Notes under the pieces: model-generated
What the model was told of the DNA's origin: nothing
The model's database searches: none
Seen by the model: only the letters and a program-made list of their open reading frames with translations
Made by a program: the position numbers and the translations under genes
Part shown: positions 5,146 to 17,031 of the stretch, piece after piece
How the letters are laid out: each line of letters starts with the position of its first letter
How positions within the stretch are numbered: position 1 is the stretch's first letter
Origin: Oikopleura dioica
Taxonomy: Eukaryota > Animalia > Chordata
DNA: 64,000 bases
Reading direction: 5' to 3'
Assembly (NCBI GenBank): GCA_907165135.1
Contig: OU015569.1
Coordinates: 10,974,001-11,038,000, forward strand

Positions 5146-6490
5146 ATGTCGAATGGGAAGTCGAAGCGAACAGTTTGGGTGGGGAATTTGGAACCGAGAG
5201 TTACGGAAGAAATCCTTTTCGAACTTTTTCTTCAAAGTTAGAAACATGTTAAATCTGACCGTTTAACCGACGTTTTAGTTGCTCCATTGGAGGATGTTAC
5301 AAAGCCAAAAAACAAGAACTTTGCCTTCATTCTCTTCACGCACAAAGAAAGCCCAGACTACGCCGTAAGAACCCTCAACAAAATTTCCCTTTTTGGGCAA
5401 AAGATTCATGTTAAACTTCATGAGAAGAAGCGGAAAAGAAAATCGAGAGGTAAACGATTCAATGACTTCTTTTGTTTTTTCATCGAGTTTTTTCAAGAGA
5501 TGGTGGATCGACGAGTAGAAGATTGCAGCCAAAGTCGTGGTCGGAAGAAAAACAGTCGACGAAGCTCTCCAAGCGGCTTTGATGATCGCGTCAACAACTC
5601 GTCTTCTCGCAAAGATGAAAACGAAAACGACACTGGAGTCACTTGCACTGGTCCAGCCTCTGAGAGTGTCAACTTCATCCATGATTTCAATAAAACAGGG
5701 TTCAATCGCAGTCTCCGCAAAACTCTAAAGAAATTGAATATTCAAACTCCGACTCCTGTCCAAAGCGCTTCTATCCCGGTAAGAAAACATTCAATTTTCG
5801 TCAATTTATTTAACTTTCGTCAATTTTATTCAATTTCAGGCGATCATGTTGAAGCGTGATATCATAGCGTGCGCTCATACCGGTTCAGGCAAGACTGCTG
5901 CCTATCTCTTGCCCATTGTTGACGATTTGATGAAGCAGAACATCAAAGCCGAGTCCGCTGAGCGCCAATTTCCCCAAGCTCTAATCGTCTCTCCGGATCG
6001 TACCGAATGCCGCATGATCTACGAGCAGTGCTGCATGTTCGCAAAGGGCACAGGAATCATGGCCCAGTGTCTCCATAAAGGAATGGATATTAAATTCGCT
6101 CGCAAGGTAAGCTTTCCATTGTTGTCAAACAGAGCTAACTTTTAACTCCAAGAAAATACAAGAAAACGGGTGCAACATTCTGATTGGAACGGCACAACGA
6201 GTAAATGATGTCTTGGAGAAATTAGATTTTCTTGAACTCGGCAAGCTTCAATACTTCGTCATTGATGAAGCCGAACTCACGCTTGACGTGCGTTTTGGAC
6301 CGATTAAGAAGCTTCTTGTAACGGGTCGTGTAAGATTTAATTGAAATTATGAGCTTTCTATGGATTCGGTATTAAGGAAACGCCTGGTAAACGCCAAACA
6401 CTCATGTTTTCCGCCACCTTCTCCCCAATTCTCCAACGATTCGCCACCGAATATCTGGACTCGGAAACCTTGTTCATTAAAGTGGATTAA
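5146..6490 (+). CDS. RBM7/RBM11-like RRM fused to an N-terminal RecA (DEAD) domain only, Vasa/DDX3-like
   Basis: RTVWVGNLEPRVTEEILFELF...NFAFILF (RRM); PTPVQ Q-motif; [20 protein letters not shown]; IDEAE; RQTLMFSATF; stop after LFIKVD at 6488-6490. Confidence 0.85.
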
Positions 6491-6782
6491 AATTTTCAGC
6501 TGCTTTCGATATCTGCCTTCAAAACTGCATCCAATGCAGACACAATTATTGAGCTCGTTTTTAAAGAATAAAACGGAATCGGTAAAAAATGGACTTTTCC
6601 TTCGCAAATTGCAAGGCATCATTTTCGAAAAAAGGATGACGTCCAAGACTCATATTTTTTATAAACAAGCGTGAATGTACAAAAGCGTTTAATCGAATAC
6701 AAATTAAAAAGTATTAACAAATAAATAATGAATTTACAAATTGAAAATGGGTTTCTTCCGTTCTGAGCAGGTGGATTTTCAG

Positions 6783-9700
6783 TTAATGATTCTTCATGCC
6801 GACCATTTCGGAAATGTTGTTCGCAAGGCGTTCCAGCTTCTTCTTTTTATCGTACTTGGATCGGTCGGACTTGGCCAGTCGAAGCACAGCATCACGAGTA
6901 CAGTCAGCTGTTTCCGCCTCGATTCTGTAGCTTGGGTTTCGTGCTTTCAATTTTTCCATGTACTGAAAAAATTTTCATTCGAGCTACAATCGTAAACATT
7001 ACCTTTTCTAAATCGCTTTTCTGGAAGACTTCTTCGACTTCGACCTCTTCCGTCAGTCGGTAGGCCTTGTTTATCCTTCGCACAAAATTCTCAACTCGCA
7101 GTCGGTGTTCGTCAGATTTCTTAATTGTTGTTCATGGAGACTAGTGTGAAGGAATTTTAAAAACCTGGATGCAGAAAGGATCTCCTCTGTCTGCCTTGAT
7201 CGGTCTATCGAGTTCAAACTCGCTGGCGAGACGAGAGGCGAGTCGCTCTTGAACTTCTGCGTTTTCAAGCTAGGAACAAGTAATTAAGTTTAGTGCTTTC
7301 TCGAATGAAAAATATCCTACCGCTTTCTCGGCAGTCTCAGCGGCCAAAATTTTTCTGTCATTGTCGGCGCTCTTTCGCTTGTCCCACTCGCGGTACATTT
7401 TCTCAATTTCGACCGAATAGTCGTGCATCAAGTAGTTTTTGACAGAAGGTTTTGTTCCTTTCCAGCCAGATTTCTTAACAGATTTAAGAGAAATTCCCTC
7501 TAGAACCGAAGTACCTGGGCGGATTTGAGCTTTAGCTGCTGAGGCCGCTTGTCTGTCTTGAAAAGCTTGTCAATCTGAAAAAAGAGATTTAATAAATAAA
7601 CATCGGTGCTTGACTCACTGTAGCATGCGATTCTTTTTCGTTGAATTGAGCAGTAGCGACTAGCTTTTTCTTCTTTACTGGAGCAAGGTTTTTCTTTGCT
7701 TTTGTTGGGACAACGACTCGCAGTTTGACGGAAATCTGCTCACCGTCTTCCGTTTGACAGGTGAACGTTGCTGAATCGTTCCATTCAGCTCCTAATTAAA
7801 ATTTCAAGAAAGATACAATCAAGATTTGCTTTACCCATGATAACAAGGACTCGTTTGAGGCCAACGGCGATGATTTCATAATGCTTGCCAACCTGACATC
7901 TACCTCGGCCTCTCAGCCACGTGACTTCCTTGGGATGAGAGAGATCAACTTCGAAGCGAACGATGGACCCTTCCCGGACAGTCTGATGCTCAAGCTCGTT
8001 CAAAAACTTGAAGGGCGCATCTGGTGGCGCCATTCCGTAAACAAGGCTCTCATTGATTGGCGCTGGAGGAGTGAAGAAAAGTTGTTCTTTTCTCGCTAGC
8101 TGGCTTAATCGCTCTTGGACGAAGAGAACGTCTTCGTCGAGGGTCTTGGTGATGTCATCTCCTCGTTCGAGCCTTTGTTCCCACTGAATTACTTGCGATA
8201 CACCTGAGAATTGCGTAAAAAGTTTTAATAAAAAAGAGAAAAATTGCCTTCGATGAAAGTATTGACGAGCATGATTTCGGACTTTCCAAGTCTGTCGGCG
8301 TTCGAGATATCCCAAATGCCTCCGACAGAATCAGAGTCGACTCCAGCACCACCTCGGGCCTGGAGACCAAGTCTCGCGAGGATTTCTTTGAAATCGTCTC
8401 GATCGGAGAAGAATGGAATCTGGACCATCGCTCCAGCACGGAGACCAGTTCCGAGATTGCTTGGACATGTCAGAATCCAGCCGAGATGATCGCTGTGCAT
8501 AAAATCGTAGCCTTGGGATTTCAAGCATTCTTGAATCGCCTTGGTAGCAACAGCAAATCGCTCGATGATTTTTCGAACATTGTCGCCCTTTTCCATTGAA
8601 ACGATTCGCAAGTGATCTTCTTCATTGACCCAGACGAAGAGGTTCTTGTCGTTGTTGTGGTAAATACCTCGAGCGTCAGGCCAGTGTCGACCGCAACCAG
8701 ATGCAAGCAACAAAGTACTATCAGGTTCCTAGAAGAAAATAAACAAAAGTCGTTTTGTAAAATGCTTGCCTGGAATAGGTTTCCATTGGATCTAAGTTCT
8801 TCTTCCTTCTCAACACTCATGCCAGTGGGTTTTTGTTCAAAACTGCGGGAGCCATGGAGTGGAAAGTAATCTCCTTGAAGGTCTCCTTCGAGCGCCAGGA
8901 GAGACTTTGTTACTGCTGCTTCGAGTTCTCGTCTTTCCTCAAAACTGATGCAGGGTGGGAGCTTGAAACCGCGCACAGATCTGCCAGTTCTACAACGCGT
9001 TGTCAGAACGAAGCGGCCAGAAACATCAATTGGTGTTTGCGAGAGCTGTGAGACATCCAAGTTGGTGATGTGTTTGGCGTCGGCTGCGTAGCCATTGTGG
9101 CGTGCTGAAATGACTGGATCGAAAAGATCCTCGAAGGTTTTTAGAAATTTTGAAAACTAGAGTCTTGGTACCTTGAAAACAGTGTACGAATCTTCATCGC
9201 CCGCGACCATACCAACAGTTTTGATATGAGGATGACCTGGATTGTCGATTCCGGTTTTGATGCAATGTCCAAGGTTGACTCCGGAAGCAGTGGTTTTCGA
9301 TTTAAGGGAGTCGTACAATCCTGGGTTGGCCTTCATCGCTTCGGAAAAAAAGGAATTGTGGGCGGCCAAACTTGGCAACTTGGCGGGCATTTTTTCGGCT
9401 GAAAATGTCGCACCCTTTTCGTCAGAGTAGTATTCCGCATCGCCGCAGCCAGCTTGAATCCACTCTGGCAGCTTTCGAACAGACTTGGCGAGGCCAGTTG
9501 GGGGATAACAATCCTCGTCATCATCTTCTTCCTCGTCCCATTCCCCTTCTTCGATCTTTCGAAGTTTTTCAAGCTTCTTCTGCACCTTTTGAATATCTTT
9601 GTCCAAAGTAAGATCGATCTCCTGCTCTTGCTCAAGTCGTTTCTCCCATCGAATGATTTGCGCAACGCCTTCAATAAAAATATTGACCAAAGAAATTTCT

Positions 9701-12700
9701 GATTTTCCAAGTCTGTCGGCATTTGAGATGTCCCAAATACCGCCGACGGAATCTGAATCAACACCTCCGCCGCCTCGAGCCTGGAGACCCAACTTTCTCA
9801 AGATGATTTTGAAATCGTCTCTGTCCGAAAACAGTGGCACTTTGACCATGGCGCCAGCTCGCAAGCCCGTTCCAAGATTGCTGGGACAAGTCAAAATCCA
9901 GCCGAGATGATTGTTGTGCATGAAATCAAAGCCTTGCTCTTTCAAGCAGCTCTGGATAGCCTTTGTAGCGAGGGCGAATCGCTCGATGATGGTTCTGACG
10001 TTGTCTCCTTTTTCCATTGACACGATTCGCATGTGATCTTCTTCGTTGACCCAGACGAAGAGGTTTTTATTATTGTTGTGGTAGATACCTCGAGCATCGG
10101 GCCAGTGTCGGCCGCATCCGGAAGAGAGAAGCAGAGTACTATCTGGTTCTTGGAATAAATTTCCGTTTGATCGGAGCTCTTCCTCTTTCTCGAGAGTCAT
10201 TCCAGTCGGTTTCTCCTCATAACTTCTTGAGCCATGAAGTGGAAAGTAATCACCTTCCAAATCGCCAGACAGAGTTTTCAAGCTCTTAACAATTGCAGCC
10301 TCGAGTTTTCGTCGCTCATCAAAACCCAGACATGGTGGCAATCGGAATCCACGGACAGAGCGACCAGTTCGGCAGCGAGATGTCAGGACATATTTGCCGT
10401 CGGGATCGATCGTCGTGGTGGAAAGGTAGTCAACGTCGAGGTTGGTTGGATGAAGAGCATCTGCTTCATAGCCGTTGTGGCGTGCGGAAATGACCGGATC
10501 AAAGAGTTCCCGGAAAGTCGAGTAAGATTCTTCATCACCAGCGACCATTCCGACAGTTTTAATATGCGGGTGTCCAGGGTTATCGATTCCAGTTTTGATG
10601 CAGTGGCCAAGAGTGACACCGAGCTTCGTTTTCTTATCCTTCAGCTTCGCATAAAGCTCTGGCTGGGCTTTCAATGCCTCTGAGAAGTATGAATTGTGTT
10701 TTGACAAGTCGGGACATTCTTCTGGAGCAGCTGCTCCAAGGAACGTAGCGTTTTTCTCTTCGCAAAAGTACTCATTGTCACCACAGCCAGCTTGAATCCA
10801 CTCTGGTAGTTTTCGAACAGATCTTGAAAGACCTGTTGGTGGGTACTGGTCGTTTTCAACTTCATAGAGATCTTCAAGCGCTAGAAGCACTTTCTCAATG
10901 TCTTCTTTGAGCGTTTCGTCGATCTTTTCTCCATCTTCGAGCCTCTGTTCCCAACGAATAACTTGCGCAATGCCCTCGATAAAGGTATTGACAAGCATGA
11001 TTTCCGATTTTCCAAGTCTATCAGCATTAGAAATGTCCCAGATACCACCAACAGAGTCAGAATCGACTCCACCTCCACCTCGAGCTTGGAGACCAAGCTG
11101 CTTCAGAATGTCCTTGAAATCGGGCCGGGCCGAGAAAAGCGGGACTTTGACCATAGCTCCCGCTCGAAGACCAGTTCCAAGGTTGCTAGGACAAGTTAAA
11201 ATCCATCCCAAATGCTCGCTGTGCATAAAGTCAAATCCTTGCTCTTGAAGGCAATTTTGAATCGCTTGAGTGGCATCGGCAAAAGTCTGGATGATTTTCC
11301 GGACATTGTCGCCTTTTTCCATTGATACGATTCGCATGTGATCTTCTTCGTTAACCCAGACAAAGAGATTTCTAGCACCGTTGTGGTAAATGCCACGAGC
11401 ATCGGGCCAGTGTCGGCCGCAGCCAGAAGAAAGAAGGAGGGTACTGTCTGGTTCTTGGAAGAGATTTCCATTCGATCGGAGCTCTTCTTCCTTGGCAAGC
11501 GACATTCCCGTCGGTTTTTCCGTGAAACTTCTCGATCCATGCAGAGGGAAATAATCACCTTCGAGACTACCCTTCAACGTCTTCAGACTTTTGACAATAA
11601 CGCCTTCAAGCTTTCGTCTCTCTTCGAAATCGAGACAGGGAGGAAGTCGGAATCCGCGCACCGAGCGGCCAGTTCGACATCGGGTCGTGAGCACGTATTT
11701 TCCCGTCGGATCAATGGGCGTTTGCGAAAGCTGATCAACGTTCAAATTTGTTGGGTGCTTGGCATCGTAGGCATAGCCATTGTGTCTTGCAGAAATGACT
11801 GGGTCAAAGAGCTCCTTGAAGGTTTCATAAGATTCTTCATCACCAGCTACCATTCCAACGGTCTAATGTAGGGATAGTTATCTGTCTTTCTAATACTACA
11901 GAATCAGGAATTGAAATGTCTACAAATGGTATGACAAAAAAAGCAAAGGCGATGTCTGATCCCAATCCTTAATGTGTGGGTGTCCAGGGTTGTCAATACC
12001 AGTTTTGATACAATGACCTAAAGTAACTCCAGCTGCTGTTTTCTTAGACTTCAAGCGATCATAAAGTCCAGGATCAGCATTCATTGCTTCGGAGAAAAAT
12101 GAATTGTGCTTGCTCAAATCGGGAAGAGTATCTGGCATCTGAGCTCCGAGGAAAGTCGCGTTTTTCTGAGCACAGTTGTATTCCGCATCCCCGCAGCCTA
12201 GTTGAATCCATTCAGGCAGCTGTCGAACTGATTTGGAAAGTCCAGTTGGTGGATACTGATCGTTTTCTTCTTCCAGCAAATCTGCAAGCCGCTTTTGCAC
12301 TTTCTCAATGTCTCGATTGAGGTTCTCATCGATGCTTTCTCCGGTCTCCAACTTGCGCTCCCAGGCGATCACTTTGGAGATACCCTCGATGAAAGTGTTG
12401 ACGAGAGAGATCTCTGACTTGCCGAGTCTATCCGCGTTTGAAATATCCCAGATTCCACCGACGGAATCAGAATCAACACCACCTCCGCCTCGCGCTTGAA
12501 GACCGAGTTGTTTCAAAATATCCTTGAAATCGGGCCGGGCGGAGAAGAGAGGGACCTTGACCATGGAACCAGCTCGAAGTCCAGTTCCCAAGTTGCTAGG
12601 ACACGTTAAAATCCACCCCAAATGATCGCTGTGCATGAAGTCGAAGCCTTGCTCTTGCAAACAATTTTGAATGGCCTTGGTCGCATCGGCAAAGGTCTGG

Positions 12701-14942
12701 ATGATTTTTCGAACGTTGTCGCCTTTTTCCATCGACACGATTCTCATGTGATCTTCCTCGTTTACCCAGACGAAGAGGTTGCGATTGTTGTTGTGATAAA
12801 TGCCACGAGCGTCTGGCCAGTGTCGTCCGCAGCCAGAAGAAAGAAGGAGAGTGCTGTCTGGTTCTTGGAAGAGGTTTCCATTCGATCGAAGCTCTTCTTC
12901 TTTCTCAAGACTCATTCCACTTGGCTTTTCGGAATAGCTTCTCGATCCGTGAAGCGGGAAATAGTCGCCTTCTAAGCTTCCTTTCAGAGTTTTCAGACTT
13001 TTGACGATGGCGCTTTCCAGTTTTCTTCGCTCTTCAAAGCCAAGACAAGGAGGCAGTCGGAAGCCTCGAACGGAGCGCCCAGTGCGGCAGCGAGTCGTCA
13101 AGACGTACTGGCCAGTCGGATCAATGGGCGTTTTTGAAAGCTTCTCGACGTTCAAATTCGTTGGATGAGTGGCATCAGCTGCATAGCCGTTGTGTCTAGC
13201 TATCAGATGGGATGAGCATAACTACCTCTTTGCTTCTTGCATATTTTATGATTTTTTTAATCATATTTTTCATCCTGTCCTGAAATGACTGGATCAAAGA
13301 GATCTTTGAAGAGAGTGTACGATTCTTCGTCTCCAGCAACCATTCCGACGGTTTTAATATGTGGATGGCCGGGGTTATCGATGCCAGTCTTGATGCAATG
13401 ACCCAAGGTGACCCCTGATGAGGTCTTCTTGTCTTTTAGTGACGCATAAAGCGCGGGATTAGCTTTAATCGCTTCGGAGAAGAATGAATTGTGAGCCTCT
13501 AAGTCAGGTAGCTCCGCTGGAACGTTAGCACCCAAAAACGTAGCGTTTTTCTCTTCGCAATAATATTCGTTGTTTCCGCAGCCAAGTTGGATCCATTCTG
13601 GCAGCTGGCGGACGGAATCAGACAATCCGTAAGGTGGATAATCCAGTGGAGGTACAGTCAGACAGCAGCCAGTGTAAACGCCAGTCTTGGAGTCTCGGAG
13701 CTGGATTTGAAAAGAGAGATTGACGAAGTTTCTTCCCTTCAAGCCGAGTTGCAAAATTTTAAATTTGTTAAGAGCTAGTTAAGCTGAATCCAAAGTCAAT
13801 CAATCGAAATAAATTATAAATGTGCAACTTTTCCTTCAACAATTTCAGGCTCCTTTCTCCAGTCGTTTTGTCTTCCTTGATTTCAACATCGTCACTAGCT
13901 TCAAATGGCGATTTTCCAAAGAACCACGTGGTCGCACGAGTAGGGGGAGAAATAACAGCCTCCAGAAAAGCTTCGCCCTCGGGTGTGATTGTTTGGTCCT
14001 CGAGAATCTTCGTGAAGGAAATCTCTGGAAACGTAACGATCGCGGACGAACGGACGGAGTCAGCGACGATGCTGACTTTGAAGGCAAGGCTGACGAAGTT
14101 TGCACCATTTTTCAGAAGAAGTTTTCTTTCTCCAGTTTCGTTGTTGCTCTCAAAGACGACATTTTCCCTGGCTGCCAACTCAGAGCCACTATTGATATTC
14201 TTAGTTCGCGAAAATTCTAAGAAATGAATATTTATTTTCCAATTACCCAAAAAGCCATTGAGTCTGCGCATCACAAGGAGAAACAGTAGCGGAGAATTGG
14301 GCGCTGCCATCTTCCCCAACAACAGCGTTTTCCAGAGGACTCGAAAATGAAGCCTCCGCAGGTGGAAAAGTCAATGAAGCGGAGGTGGAAACACCGGCAG
14401 TTCTATCAGCCTGGAGGAGGATATTGAAAGAAAGTCCAACAAAGTTCTTGGCATTTTTCAGCTTGAGAGTTCGCTCGCCACTTTCTGCGTTTGAAATTAT
14501 TTCTACGTCTTCTCCTGCATCAGAAATTGCGCTTTGTCTGAACACCGTTTTCTCATCGCTTTATCTGTTGAGTGACAACGCTAAGACCTGCTTGGTCATA
14601 AAAAACACTTATCATCAAATTGAAAGCCAATTTATAACATAAAACGAGGTGAAAGCACTTAGTCTCAAGATTTTCAAACAATAAGAATAGCTGCACTAAA
14701 ATTATTTTACGAATTTTAGCGTAAATTCATTTAGAAATTTATGGGTAAAAGAAGTTGACTTGGACTTTTTGGAGTTAGTTGAGTTCGTTGATGAAATTTT
14801 TATTTATGAAAATATAGAAAATTTATTGAATTACCCAAAGAACCAGGTCGCTGGCCAGTCAGCTGGAGAAATGACCGCGGTGAGGATGGCTGAGCCATCG
14901 TCATTGATGCACCCGTCGGCCAGGGGCTTGGTAAACTCCACC
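6783..14942 (-). CDS. Giant Ig-fused four-domain creatine-kinase-type phosphagen kinase (Ig x3, kinase x4, Ig, tail); 5' end unresolved
   Basis: Four repeats each with [46 protein letters not shown] and ISNADRLG; Ig-like repeats 13690-14942; I-set Ig 7720-7970; in-frame splicing traced through to ...GMKNH*. Confidence 0.95.
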
Positions 14943-17031
14943 TATAGACACGAGTTACACCAAGTTCGCTAATCCTCTCTATCTGAGTCAAACCTGCACT
15001 TCGGAGGCCATTCTCGAGTTAGATTGGACCTTACAGCCATTTTCACAGCCTGGATCAAAATTGATCAAAGGGGGATTAGCGCTAAATTCATCCCCCGGCC
15101 TGACCATGCCTTAGTAACTTACTACCTTTTATACTTTTTATATCGAAGTTCAACGAATCATCTTTACAATAAATTGATTATTTTTTACTGAGCGCAAGAC
15201 AATAAAGCCTTTATTTTTGATATCCAATAAATTCATTCTTTGTAAAAAAAAATCCTTGATGCTTAGATTCTAGCTCCCAGAGTGGGAATCTGATTGCGCT
15301 AAATCTGATGAAATGGTTTATTGACAAAATGGAACGGACGGCATTTTTTCTTTGACTGTTTGGACGGATTCCGTTCAACTGCCTGTGCAACTGTATTAGA
15401 ACTTATGCGAGTATTTGAAAAGAAAAGAGTGTTTTCCAATTATCTCTGCCAATTAGGCCGACCCTTGTCAAATTAAACCTAAAGTCAGCGCGGAGGACAA
15501 AAAGTTATATTGATCTCAGTTTAACTAATAGTAATACAGTACAATCTGAATGCAAACTAGAACACTGTATTTTCTGAAGAAAGAACTAGAATCCTTGTTT
15601 ATATTGTCAATTAGATATGATATCTAAGATATCGAAATCGTGGGCCATTATTTCTAGTTGAAGTTCGACCCCAGATATCAGTGATAATTTACTGATAATT
15701 TGAAAAAAATGGAATGACTCTGGAATTATTTTTTACGCGACTTTCCAAAATTATTTGGAGGGGATTTTCTAATTGAATTTTTTGAAATAAAGAGTTGTTT
15801 GAAGAGGCGAGTTAAGTTTGGTCTGCTGCGGCGAGTGAGCAAATTAACTGGATATTTTTTTCTGGTTGAGTAGGGTGCGGTCGGGTGGGGGTTAGGAGAG
15901 TGCTCCCCTGGGGCAGCGCCTTCGAAATCCTCTTTTTCTCCCAATCATCTTCAATCGATCTTTCGCCAAAGCGAGAGCATCTCTACTCCCCAAGAAATAA
16001 GCACGCCCTGTACGAGTAGTGTGTTCAACACTTTCTCACTCCGCTTATTCTCCAAGAGAGATATAGAAACGAAGAAATCAAGGAAGACAACGAAAACGAC
16101 GGGAGTGCGAGTTAACGCGCAAACAGAGCGACTTTCTGTTCATGACCCACCGATGGAGAGAAGTTTATGAAGTGGTTCGGTTGGTGCTTCCTTCCTTTAG
16201 GCGCGGCTCGGAAAAACATGCAGTTAGAAAGGGACTGTAATGATGTGAACCCATTTCGAAAATAATTTTTCAAGATAAAGTAACGTTCGTAGCGGAATAA
16301 ACAGACTAGAAAAACAATAATATCGGCACCCCACCTCCTTGGTTCTTGATTATTTACAGGACTTTTGATAACGAAAGACCATGCTCATATAATAAGAGAT
16401 ACAGTTAGCTTTCGGAACTGAAGATGAACTGGGAGATGAATAAATAATACGTACCCGTTCCTGTACTCGTGTCCTTAATACGTGTCCCGTACTGTATATT
16501 TAACCATAAGCCTAAGAATTCCTCGAGATATTCATTTTTATTTGTGAAAGTAGTGTTTTGATTATCGATTACTCTGATTACTCTTGAGGTCAACTGAGTT
16601 ACTGGAGTTTGATTAAAAGTTATTTTTTATTTCAAAAATTCTTTTTCGAGCCCCAAATAAGCTCTTTTACAGAAGTCAGTCGATTTTGAGAGCGCGTGGG
16701 ACGCAGAAACTGCACTACTCAATGACATTTTCGCTGTATATAACAAAGTAAGTATACTTTGCCAATACTGTATTGCCTGCTTCTAAAAATGACGGCTCAT
16801 TTTGTAAATTAACAAGGAGCAGGCGGCGGATCAATTATCTATCACTGGCGAAGGGACACTTTTGTTAAAATTATAACAAATTATCCGCGATTCAACGCGC
16901 TTGGATGTATATTTCAAAGATCTATTGACTTTCTGTCACATTTGGCGGCGCATGCGCATGAGTTAATTCGTTCAATTGTGTCGACGTGCCAATCGCTTCC
17001 TGGAGCAACACCCGCCCTCATCAATTTTTCA

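Follow-up and report, generated by a model that had tools for sequence, protein, structure and literature searches.

We analysed a 64,000-nucleotide stretch of the Oikopleura dioica genome (GenBank assembly GCA_907165135.1, contig OU015569.1, positions 10,974,001–11,038,000 of the forward strand; hereafter 'the window', with coordinates counted from its first nucleotide) and found that its minus strand encodes a protein in which four complete creatine kinase (CK) units are fused to immunoglobulin (Ig)-type domains. The coding gene runs from 15011 to 6783 and comprises 16 exons that specify 2,389 amino acids (about 266 kDa) without an internal stop. The order of the parts (three degenerate I-set-like repeats, four CK units, a linker, an I-set Ig domain, a Lys-rich patch and a charged tail) is confirmed as an observation. 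We consider it somewhat probable, from the sequence comparisons given below, that the protein serves as a self-anchoring, ATP-regenerating CK array on a fixed cytoskeletal partner, most likely the tail-muscle myofibril.

Gene model and the joined reading frame

The gene model was built from stop-free stretches in three frames and from junction sequences, and extends on the minus strand from an ATG at 15011 to a TAA stop at 6785–6783. Its 15 introns (40–276 nucleotides (nt)) comprise ten GT-AG, three GA-AG and two GC-AG introns, and the phases fit across all 15. Non-canonical donors thus occur in five of the 15 introns of this single gene, and the 276-nt intron inside repeat 1 (14559–14834) is several times the length of the others (40–105 nt). 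The original prediction had given the gene as 6783–14942; the former position is the end of the stop codon and the latter the acceptor of exon 2, and the predicted 18-nt first exon with the ATG (15011) had been missed. Exon 1 was assigned because no other in-frame ATG would allow translation of the N-terminal repeats. The exons, the non-canonical introns and the encoded parts (with amino acid (aa) positions and evidence, including hidden Markov model (HMM) and open reading frame (ORF) analyses) are as follows:

15011–14994, 14941–14835, 14558–14247, 14188–13834, 13736–13280, 13199–11968, 11862–9172 and 9129–8770, minus strand: exons 1–8
8728–8248, 8203–7835, 7791–7619, 7574–7515, 7473–7321, 7269–7165, 7119–7003 and 6962–6783, minus strand: exons 9–16
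13833–13737, 13279–13200 and 11967–11863, minus strand: GA-AG introns, placed by frame and paralogue continuity
8769–8729 and 8247–8204, minus strand: GC-AG introns, placed by frame and paralogue continuity
14994..15011, minus strand: exon 1, start codon and MASEVQ, then a 52-nt GT-AG intron; predicted from sequence
14369..14941, minus strand: repeat 1 (aa 7–105), split by the 276-nt intron 14834–14559; internal repeat alignment and HMM
14026..14368, minus strand: repeat 2 (aa 106–200), split by intron 14246–14189; internal repeat alignment and HMM
13647..14025, minus strand: repeat 3 (aa 201–294), split by GA-AG intron 13833–13737; Pfam, PDB profile and ORF continuity
12319..13640, minus strand: CK unit 1 (aa 297–710), split by GA-AG intron 13279–13200; Pfam and residue table
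10909..12255, minus strand: CK unit 2 (aa 732–1145), split by GA-AG intron 11967–11863; Pfam and residue table
9604..10845, minus strand: CK unit 3 (aa 1167–1580), wholly inside exon 11862–9172; Pfam and residue table
8139..9507, minus strand: CK unit 4 (aa 1613–2026), with introns 9171–9130 (GT-AG), 8769–8729 and 8247–8204; Pfam and residue table
8019..8138, minus strand: linker of 40 aa from CK unit 4 to the Ig domain, sharing an exon with each of them
7706..8018, minus strand: C-terminal I-set Ig domain (aa 2067–2156), split after strand E by the 43-nt intron 7834–7792
7619..7705, minus strand: Lys-rich patch (aa 2157–2185), 8 Lys/Arg among 29 aa, isoelectric point 10.2
6783..7574, minus strand: charged tail (aa 2186–2389, 204 aa), five exons and the stop at 6785–6783; splice logic

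Both Ig–kinase junctions lie inside single exons. Exon 13736–13280 holds the end of repeat 3 together with the start of CK unit 1, and exon 8203–7835 holds the end of CK unit 4, the linker and Ig strands A–E; the kinase array is therefore covalently joined to Ig domains of the titin/obscurin/MyBP-C type. Units 1 and 2 are likewise joined within exon 13199–11968, and units 2, 3 and 4 within the 2,691-nt exon 11862–9172, so that the CK array is one reading frame rather than a row of cistrons. Reading of the sequence revealed no stop, start context or intercistronic spacer at the Ig–kinase or unit–unit junctions. The single spliced frame with Ig and kinase parts that had been proposed is thus borne out by a stop-free model of 2,389 codons. 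An HMM scan of all ORFs in the window found no additional Ig-like repeat or CK unit. The 2,389-residue protein has no signal peptide and no hydrophobic segment (maximum KD19 1.3), and the product is predicted to be cytosolic.

Creatine kinase units and their ancestry

Pfam identified four N-terminal (PF02807) and four C-terminal (PF00217) ATP:guanido phosphotransferase domains, all above the curated cut-offs and with scores of up to 355.8 and 175.1 bits on the 901-residue exon alone. Among solved structures, the top single-domain relatives were creatine kinases (B, M and mitochondrial; E about 1e-117), far above the arginine, glycocyamine and lombricine kinases, and CK unit 3 aligned to human CK-B (3b6r) at E 4e-118. 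Measured from its YPP motif through the last residue of the C-terminal helix, every unit is 414 residues long with no insertion or deletion among the four, in agreement with the four tandem phosphagen kinase units of roughly 400 residues noted at the outset. Pairwise identity among the units is 78–87% for protein and 70–77% for DNA; the proportion of synonymous differences (pS) is 0.70–0.82, that is, saturated, and that of nonsynonymous differences (pN) is 0.09–0.16. This divergence in DNA and at synonymous sites shows the units to be old and selected, and rules out an assembly-duplicated kinase array, which had been named beforehand as an outcome that would overturn the prediction.

Residues were mapped through alignment to human CK-B (3b6r) numbering. 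All four units keep His66, Ile69, Arg96, Arg130, Arg132 and Arg135; Trp228, Asn230, Glu231, Glu232, Asp233 and Arg236 (the NEED motif with Glu232); and Cys283 (in CPSNLGT), Ser285, Arg292, Arg320, Val325, Asp326 and Arg341. The residue table thereby upholds the earlier statement that the NEED motif, the CPSNLGT Cys, the Arg cluster and the Ile and Val of the HPHI and GVD motifs are present in every unit. Ile69 and Val325 are creatine-specificity residues according to established structural work on CK, and the motifs that contain them (GHPHI and GGGVD, respectively) occur in all four units. Given these residues, the four units would be catalytically competent creatine kinases that use creatine as their substrate.

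Among named proteins, single-domain Oikopleura dioica CKs (P0309, P0312, P0335 and P0367) come closest, with 72–74% identity over the whole unit including its N-terminal extension; these consist of one unit (426–450 aa) and have neither Ig nor tail. In single-domain trees, the four units are monophyletic (100/100) within an Oikopleura-type clade (100/99) that also contains the single-domain Oikopleura CKs. A different clade (100/100) holds the canonical metazoan CKs, flagellar enzymes among them, of ascidian, echinoderm, annelid, cnidarian and sponge. The units are therefore neither orthologous to the three-domain flagellar CK of metazoans nor derived from it; they belong to an Oikopleura-specific clade with alveolate signatures. 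Oikopleura-type CKs have in common with those of Perkinsus, Amoebophrya and Hematodinium a 10-residue insertion, replacement of His296 and a further 10-residue motif; the insertion, the change of His296 to Met and the motif are absent from every canonical metazoan CK checked. Two further features, GNLFQ and the N-terminal extension YPPxGL..EWIxxGCGDxEY.C, are common only to Oikopleura-type CKs and the three-domain group including Hematodinium P0163, a protein whose transcriptome shotgun assembly prefix (GEMP01) was identified through PMC6642578.

Alveolate CKs (Perkinsus marinus P0225, Amoebophrya A120 P0165 and Hematodinium P0163) are 52–60% identical to the window units, above any non-appendicularian animal CK, although they are protist proteins and lack Ig domains. 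In one search the Perkinsus and Amoebophrya enzymes were the best named matches, but an alveolate genome as the source of the window is rejected because named Oikopleura dioica CKs are closer (72–74%) and because of the sarcomeric Ig domains and the intron style; the nearest named relatives and the intron style point to an O. dioica lineage. The Perkinsus enzymes are described as creatine kinases in the title of Fraga, Ellington and Suzuki (2022; via PMC9678886). Hematodinium P0163 is multi-domain like the window protein, with three units, but starts MGCGSS (an acylation signal); its units form a clade separate from those of the window, and the tandem arrays therefore arose or were homogenized independently. 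A tree uniting Oikopleura-type and metazoan CKs had a log-likelihood 42 lower and was not quite rejected by the AU (approximately unbiased) test (p 0.069). On the basis of the trees and shared signatures, alveolate-to-appendicularian horizontal transfer of the whole Oikopleura CK family is probable. A more far-reaching reading, which we put forward only tentatively and think rather doubtful, is that the protein is a chimera of two origins, in which a CK of syndinian or perkinsid type was acquired by horizontal transfer, tandemly multiplied three- to four-fold and welded to the animal's own sarcomeric I-set Ig. If true, it would be the first natural protein with the phosphocreatine circuit built covalently into the myofibril, and the 'Rosetta stone' fusion would be an independent argument for functional coupling of CK with sarcomeric Ig proteins.

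Immunoglobulin-type domains, tail and conservation

The C-terminal Ig domain bears a core signature consisting of VTWLRG (with the strand C Trp) and DSATFTC (strand F), both kept in contigs L003 and L005 of related lineages (see below); the strand B Cys is absent. Strands F–G, which carry DSATFTC, lie downstream of intron 7834–7792. The first two thirds of the domain alone matched Pfam I-set (PF07679) at 16.9 bits (E 0.0068, profile positions 2–60; gathering score 23.7), and the same stretch in two relatives gave 15.9 and 17.2 bits (E 0.013 and 0.0054); I-set was the only Pfam family matched by this first part. A profile of three sequences compared with the PDB matched titin (E 2.4e-8), cardiac MyBP-C (4.2e-6) and obscurin (1.7e-4), and all 13 of the 13 best PDB matches were Ig domains of titin, MyBP-C or obscurin (E 2e-8 to 2e-3). 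Judged by these profiles, the C-terminal Ig is a genuine sarcomeric-type I-set domain, and the canonical I-set Ig with DSATFTC described in the original prediction is supported by both the part-domain match and the PDB profile. When intracellular, I-set Ig domains belong mainly to sarcomeric and cytoskeletal proteins. The Lys-rich patch and the basic 204-residue tail that follow together make 233 residues, about 42% of them charged, consistent with the charged tail of about 230 residues first noted; the tail matched nothing in Pfam or the Atlas and belongs to no recognizable family. Exon 12 (7574–7515), which is bounded by a 41-nt GT-AG intron, is conserved in L003.

By alignment and HMM, the three N-terminal repeats are mutually homologous; they measure about 95 residues each, and an intron interrupts every one of them after a W-F/L-F-G motif. 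For exon 4 (repeat 2), an ESM-feature search returned solely clusters of I-set, titin I27, obscurin and twitchin (score 0.93, with 175 features in common). In L001, a second half homologous to that of repeat 1 (QADRTAGV in common) matches Pfam I-set at E 0.002. The repeats are likely to be Ig-like in nature, the signals being weak but concordant.

Relatives of the gene were found by protein and pattern searches on five metagenome contigs (L001–L005). Three of these (L002, L003 and L004) represent a sister lineage, in which synonymous sites are saturated relative to the window (pS about 0.75). Against this lineage the CK units are 91–94% identical (pN/pS 0.058–0.075), and the C-terminal Ig (L003 and L004) is 96–98% identical with pN/pS of 0.012–0.029, making it the most constrained part of the protein. 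The linker is the least constrained, with 71–73% identity and pN/pS of 0.21–0.24 between lineages. Introns of the sister lineage are at the same places, and the intron after ...FK in CK unit 4 was seen in L002/P0213; L003 retains all five exons of the tail as well as the position of the stop, and exon 13 is 56% identical in L005. The remaining contigs (L001 and L005) belong to a more distant lineage (73–75% identical) with an N-terminal Ig-like domain that has a more canonical strand F, three CK units, the same C-terminal Ig, interrupted by the same intron, then a Lys-rich stretch and the first long exon of the tail; a Lys-rich stretch also follows the Ig in L003. From these comparisons, the Ig–CK fusion is conserved and the number of units varies from three to four. 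By the same measures, every part of the gene is under purifying selection; we read it as one real, selected gene. The CK units of L001 and L005 and those of the window group with their own lineage, not position by position, which suggests either that the duplications were independent or that the array underwent concerted evolution long ago.

Proposed function, alternatives and known systems

Work on muscle and sperm energetics has long asked whether CK needs to be placed next to its ATPases or acts as a bulk ATP buffer; MM-CK at the M-band is the best-known example of CK placement. In the window protein, the highly conserved C-terminal Ig would dock the molecule on a fixed cytoskeletal partner, and the adjacent Lys-rich patch, the three degenerate Ig-like repeats at the N terminus and the basic tail would probably contribute. 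This partner would most likely be the myofibril of the continuously beating tail muscle, where the four active sites of each molecule could regenerate ATP from phosphocreatine beside the ATPase. The single full-length mRNA, the enzyme activity, the use of creatine as substrate, and the place and partner of binding are inferred. The original prediction is thus upheld as to architecture, while its self-anchoring ATP-regeneration scaffold in tail muscle or cilia stays a proposal. Such a protein would be a covalent version of the vertebrate M-band arrangement, in which MM-CK docks on myomesin and M-protein. That system combines the same pair of components, CK and sarcomeric Ig-type modules, but its docking is non-covalent, its components are encoded by separate genes and its CK is a dimeric canonical enzyme, whereas the window protein is a single polypeptide whose four units come from a different CK lineage. 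PMC3080659 reviews the localization of CK to the M-band and to sperm tails, and references in that article implicate Lys-rich surfaces in MM-CK docking. Because the fusion has been kept across lineages with saturated synonymous sites and the Ig is held more tightly than the enzyme, the locus offers strong comparative evidence that placement matters. It could also provide a natural test system for the effect of Ig domains on localization and tail beating.

Several observations weigh against this reading. The vertebrate His191 and His296 are replaced by Gly and Met, respectively, in all four units; single-domain Oikopleura CKs show the same two replacements, and in the Perkinsus enzymes His296 is likewise changed. 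An intron splits every Ig, so that the Pfam scores refer to part-domains. For the N-terminal repeats, the Pfam I-set match on the first half of repeat 3 (E 0.091, profile positions 2–58) is below significance, titin is the commonest but weak match of the PDB first-half profile (E 0.06–0.5), the PDB profile of the second halves found no Ig match, and hhalign found no link between these repeats and the C-terminal Ig (probability 0.9%). The proposal of three degenerate Ig-like repeats is accordingly sustained as to three mutual repeats, and falls short of significance as to their Ig matches. Domain search and structure prediction, which had been suggested as checks, also divided: Pfam finds the kinase domains, and the AlphaFold models of exon pieces are of low confidence (predicted local distance difference test (pLDDT) scores of 40.5 for exon 4, mostly strands, and 46.1). 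The start exon is itself a prediction, and the architecture search covered the best 150 representatives and length-restricted lists. Finally, RNA runs X1 and X5–X7, searched over 9100–15099 (likeness 88), yielded 44–82 partial reads per run, mostly from paralogous CKs; none was at least 99% alike and no splice junction was confirmed.

The plankton metatranscriptome X1 contained 10% of sampled words from 7600–8400, and run searches found no organism-labelled RNA run that contains the gene. A few reads from X6 and X7 over 14102–14299, in repeat 2, match and then diverge, mostly at synonymous positions; they read NFVNLAFKI in place of the NFVSLAFKV of the window, which hints that the N-terminal repeat is transcribed in the other lineage from which these reads derive. 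Runs labelled with the same species name appear to represent a cryptic lineage other than that of the assembly.

A different site of action is conceivable, with the array serving the phosphocreatine shuttle of sperm flagella or cilia and the Ig and tail anchoring it to the axoneme or flagellar membrane. Known contiguous CKs such as the sea urchin sperm-tail trimer are indeed flagellar (PMC3080659), the closest relatives outside Oikopleura are three-domain CKs with N-terminal acylation signals (MGCGSS in Hematodinium P0163), and multi-domain kinases of protists carry the ciliary docking domains RIIa and Dpy-30. We nevertheless regard a flagellar role as unlikely: the protein starts MASEVQ, without the glycine needed for N-myristoylation, its units are not orthologous to metazoan flagellar CK, Pfam found neither RIIa nor Dpy-30 in it, and its Ig profile matches sarcomeric Ig domains (titin, MyBP-C and obscurin) rather than axonemal proteins. 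A structural role as a titin-like filament protein, in which the CK units would act as rigid spacers, as binding modules or as sensors of nucleotide or creatine and catalysis would be secondary or lost, would suit a giant protein with Ig at both ends and a long charged tail, the replacement of His191 and His296 in all units and an Ig more constrained than the kinase units. It is improbable given that, despite the great age of the duplications, none of the four units has lost any of the catalytic, phosphate-binding and specificity residues checked. Nonsynonymous change between units is also low (pN 0.09–0.16) despite saturated synonymous sites, as is pN/pS of the CK units against the sister lineage (0.058–0.075), and the His replacements are the same as in single-domain Oikopleura CKs and, for His296, in Perkinsus creatine kinases.

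The full-length protein might instead be an artefact of the gene model, the locus giving separate Ig-only and kinase-only products through internal promoters, spliced-leader trans-splicing or alternative polyadenylation, with read-through rare or absent. Appendicularians use operons and trans-splicing, no junction was confirmed by same-lineage RNA reads, and five of the 15 introns are non-canonical. Against this, the Ig–kinase and unit–unit junctions lie inside exons without stop, start context or intercistronic spacer, the phases are consistent across all 15 introns, and the order of parts and the intron positions recur in two other lineages with saturated synonymous sites; we consider such an artefact very improbable. 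The anchored, ATP-regenerating array thus remains the reading that we favour.

Multi-domain phosphagen kinases with which the protein can be compared occur in several groups. The metazoan flagellar CKs (of sea urchin, and Ciona P0184, Lytechinus P0192, Chaetopterus P0207 and Nematostella P0222) likewise carry several complete CK units per polypeptide, and the sea urchin sperm-tail CK trimer is a contiguous protein considered to hold ATP regeneration in place where ATPase activity is high (PMC3080659). They are, however, only 42–45% identical to the window units, have three units rather than four and lack Ig by Pfam; the window protein (MASEVQ) in turn lacks a Met-Gly N-myristoylation signal. 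Sponge four-domain CKs (P0166 and P0170, with Geodia barretti members P0371 and P0372; 1,464–1,492 residues) have no docking module or Ig. Dinoflagellate kinases with four to five domains (P0002, P0013 and Polykrikos P0006/P0007) have an N-terminal RIIa but no Ig, and the prawn Macrobrachium P0024 combines ankyrin repeats, three kinase domains and Dpy-30, again without Ig. These sponge, dinoflagellate and Macrobrachium kinases are 33–43% identical to the window units, and no discussion of the sponge four-domain CKs, the dinoflagellate RIIa kinases or the prawn ankyrin/Dpy-30 kinase was found in the literature searched. P0001 is a further dinoflagellate-like multi-domain phosphagen kinase. Titin, obscurin, twitchin and SPEG resemble the window protein in uniting intracellular I-set Ig with a catalytic domain in one large muscle protein, but the catalytic domain is that of a protein kinase instead of a phosphagen kinase, and they contain tens to hundreds of Ig/Fn3 modules versus four Ig or Ig-like modules here.

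None of the relatives among the best 150 representatives and length-restricted lists contains an Ig domain, and a near-identical long protein is absent from these sets. In long single-CK proteins, Pfam detected IQ motifs and domains of unknown function but no Ig, and exact look-up of the 898-residue ORF returned no record. A full-text literature search, which covered the phosphagen-kinase literature in part, found no Ig–CK fusion, four-domain CK or Oikopleura multi-domain CK. The view that no protein of this architecture had been described thus holds among the relatives examined and the searchable literature, and no already characterized orthologue with the same architecture, which would have contradicted it, was found there. 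Targeting modules recur in the family, as multi-domain phosphagen kinases elsewhere bear RIIa, Dpy-30 or ankyrin. What appears to be new here is the Ig as a targeting module on contiguous phosphagen kinases, not a contiguous or four-domain CK as such; the locus would extend the range of contiguous phosphagen kinases and add a new type of targeting module.

Next to this gene, a neighbour on the plus strand (5146–6700), with RNA-recognition motif (RRM) and DEAD-box-like pieces, is convergent with it and ends within a few hundred bases of its stop.

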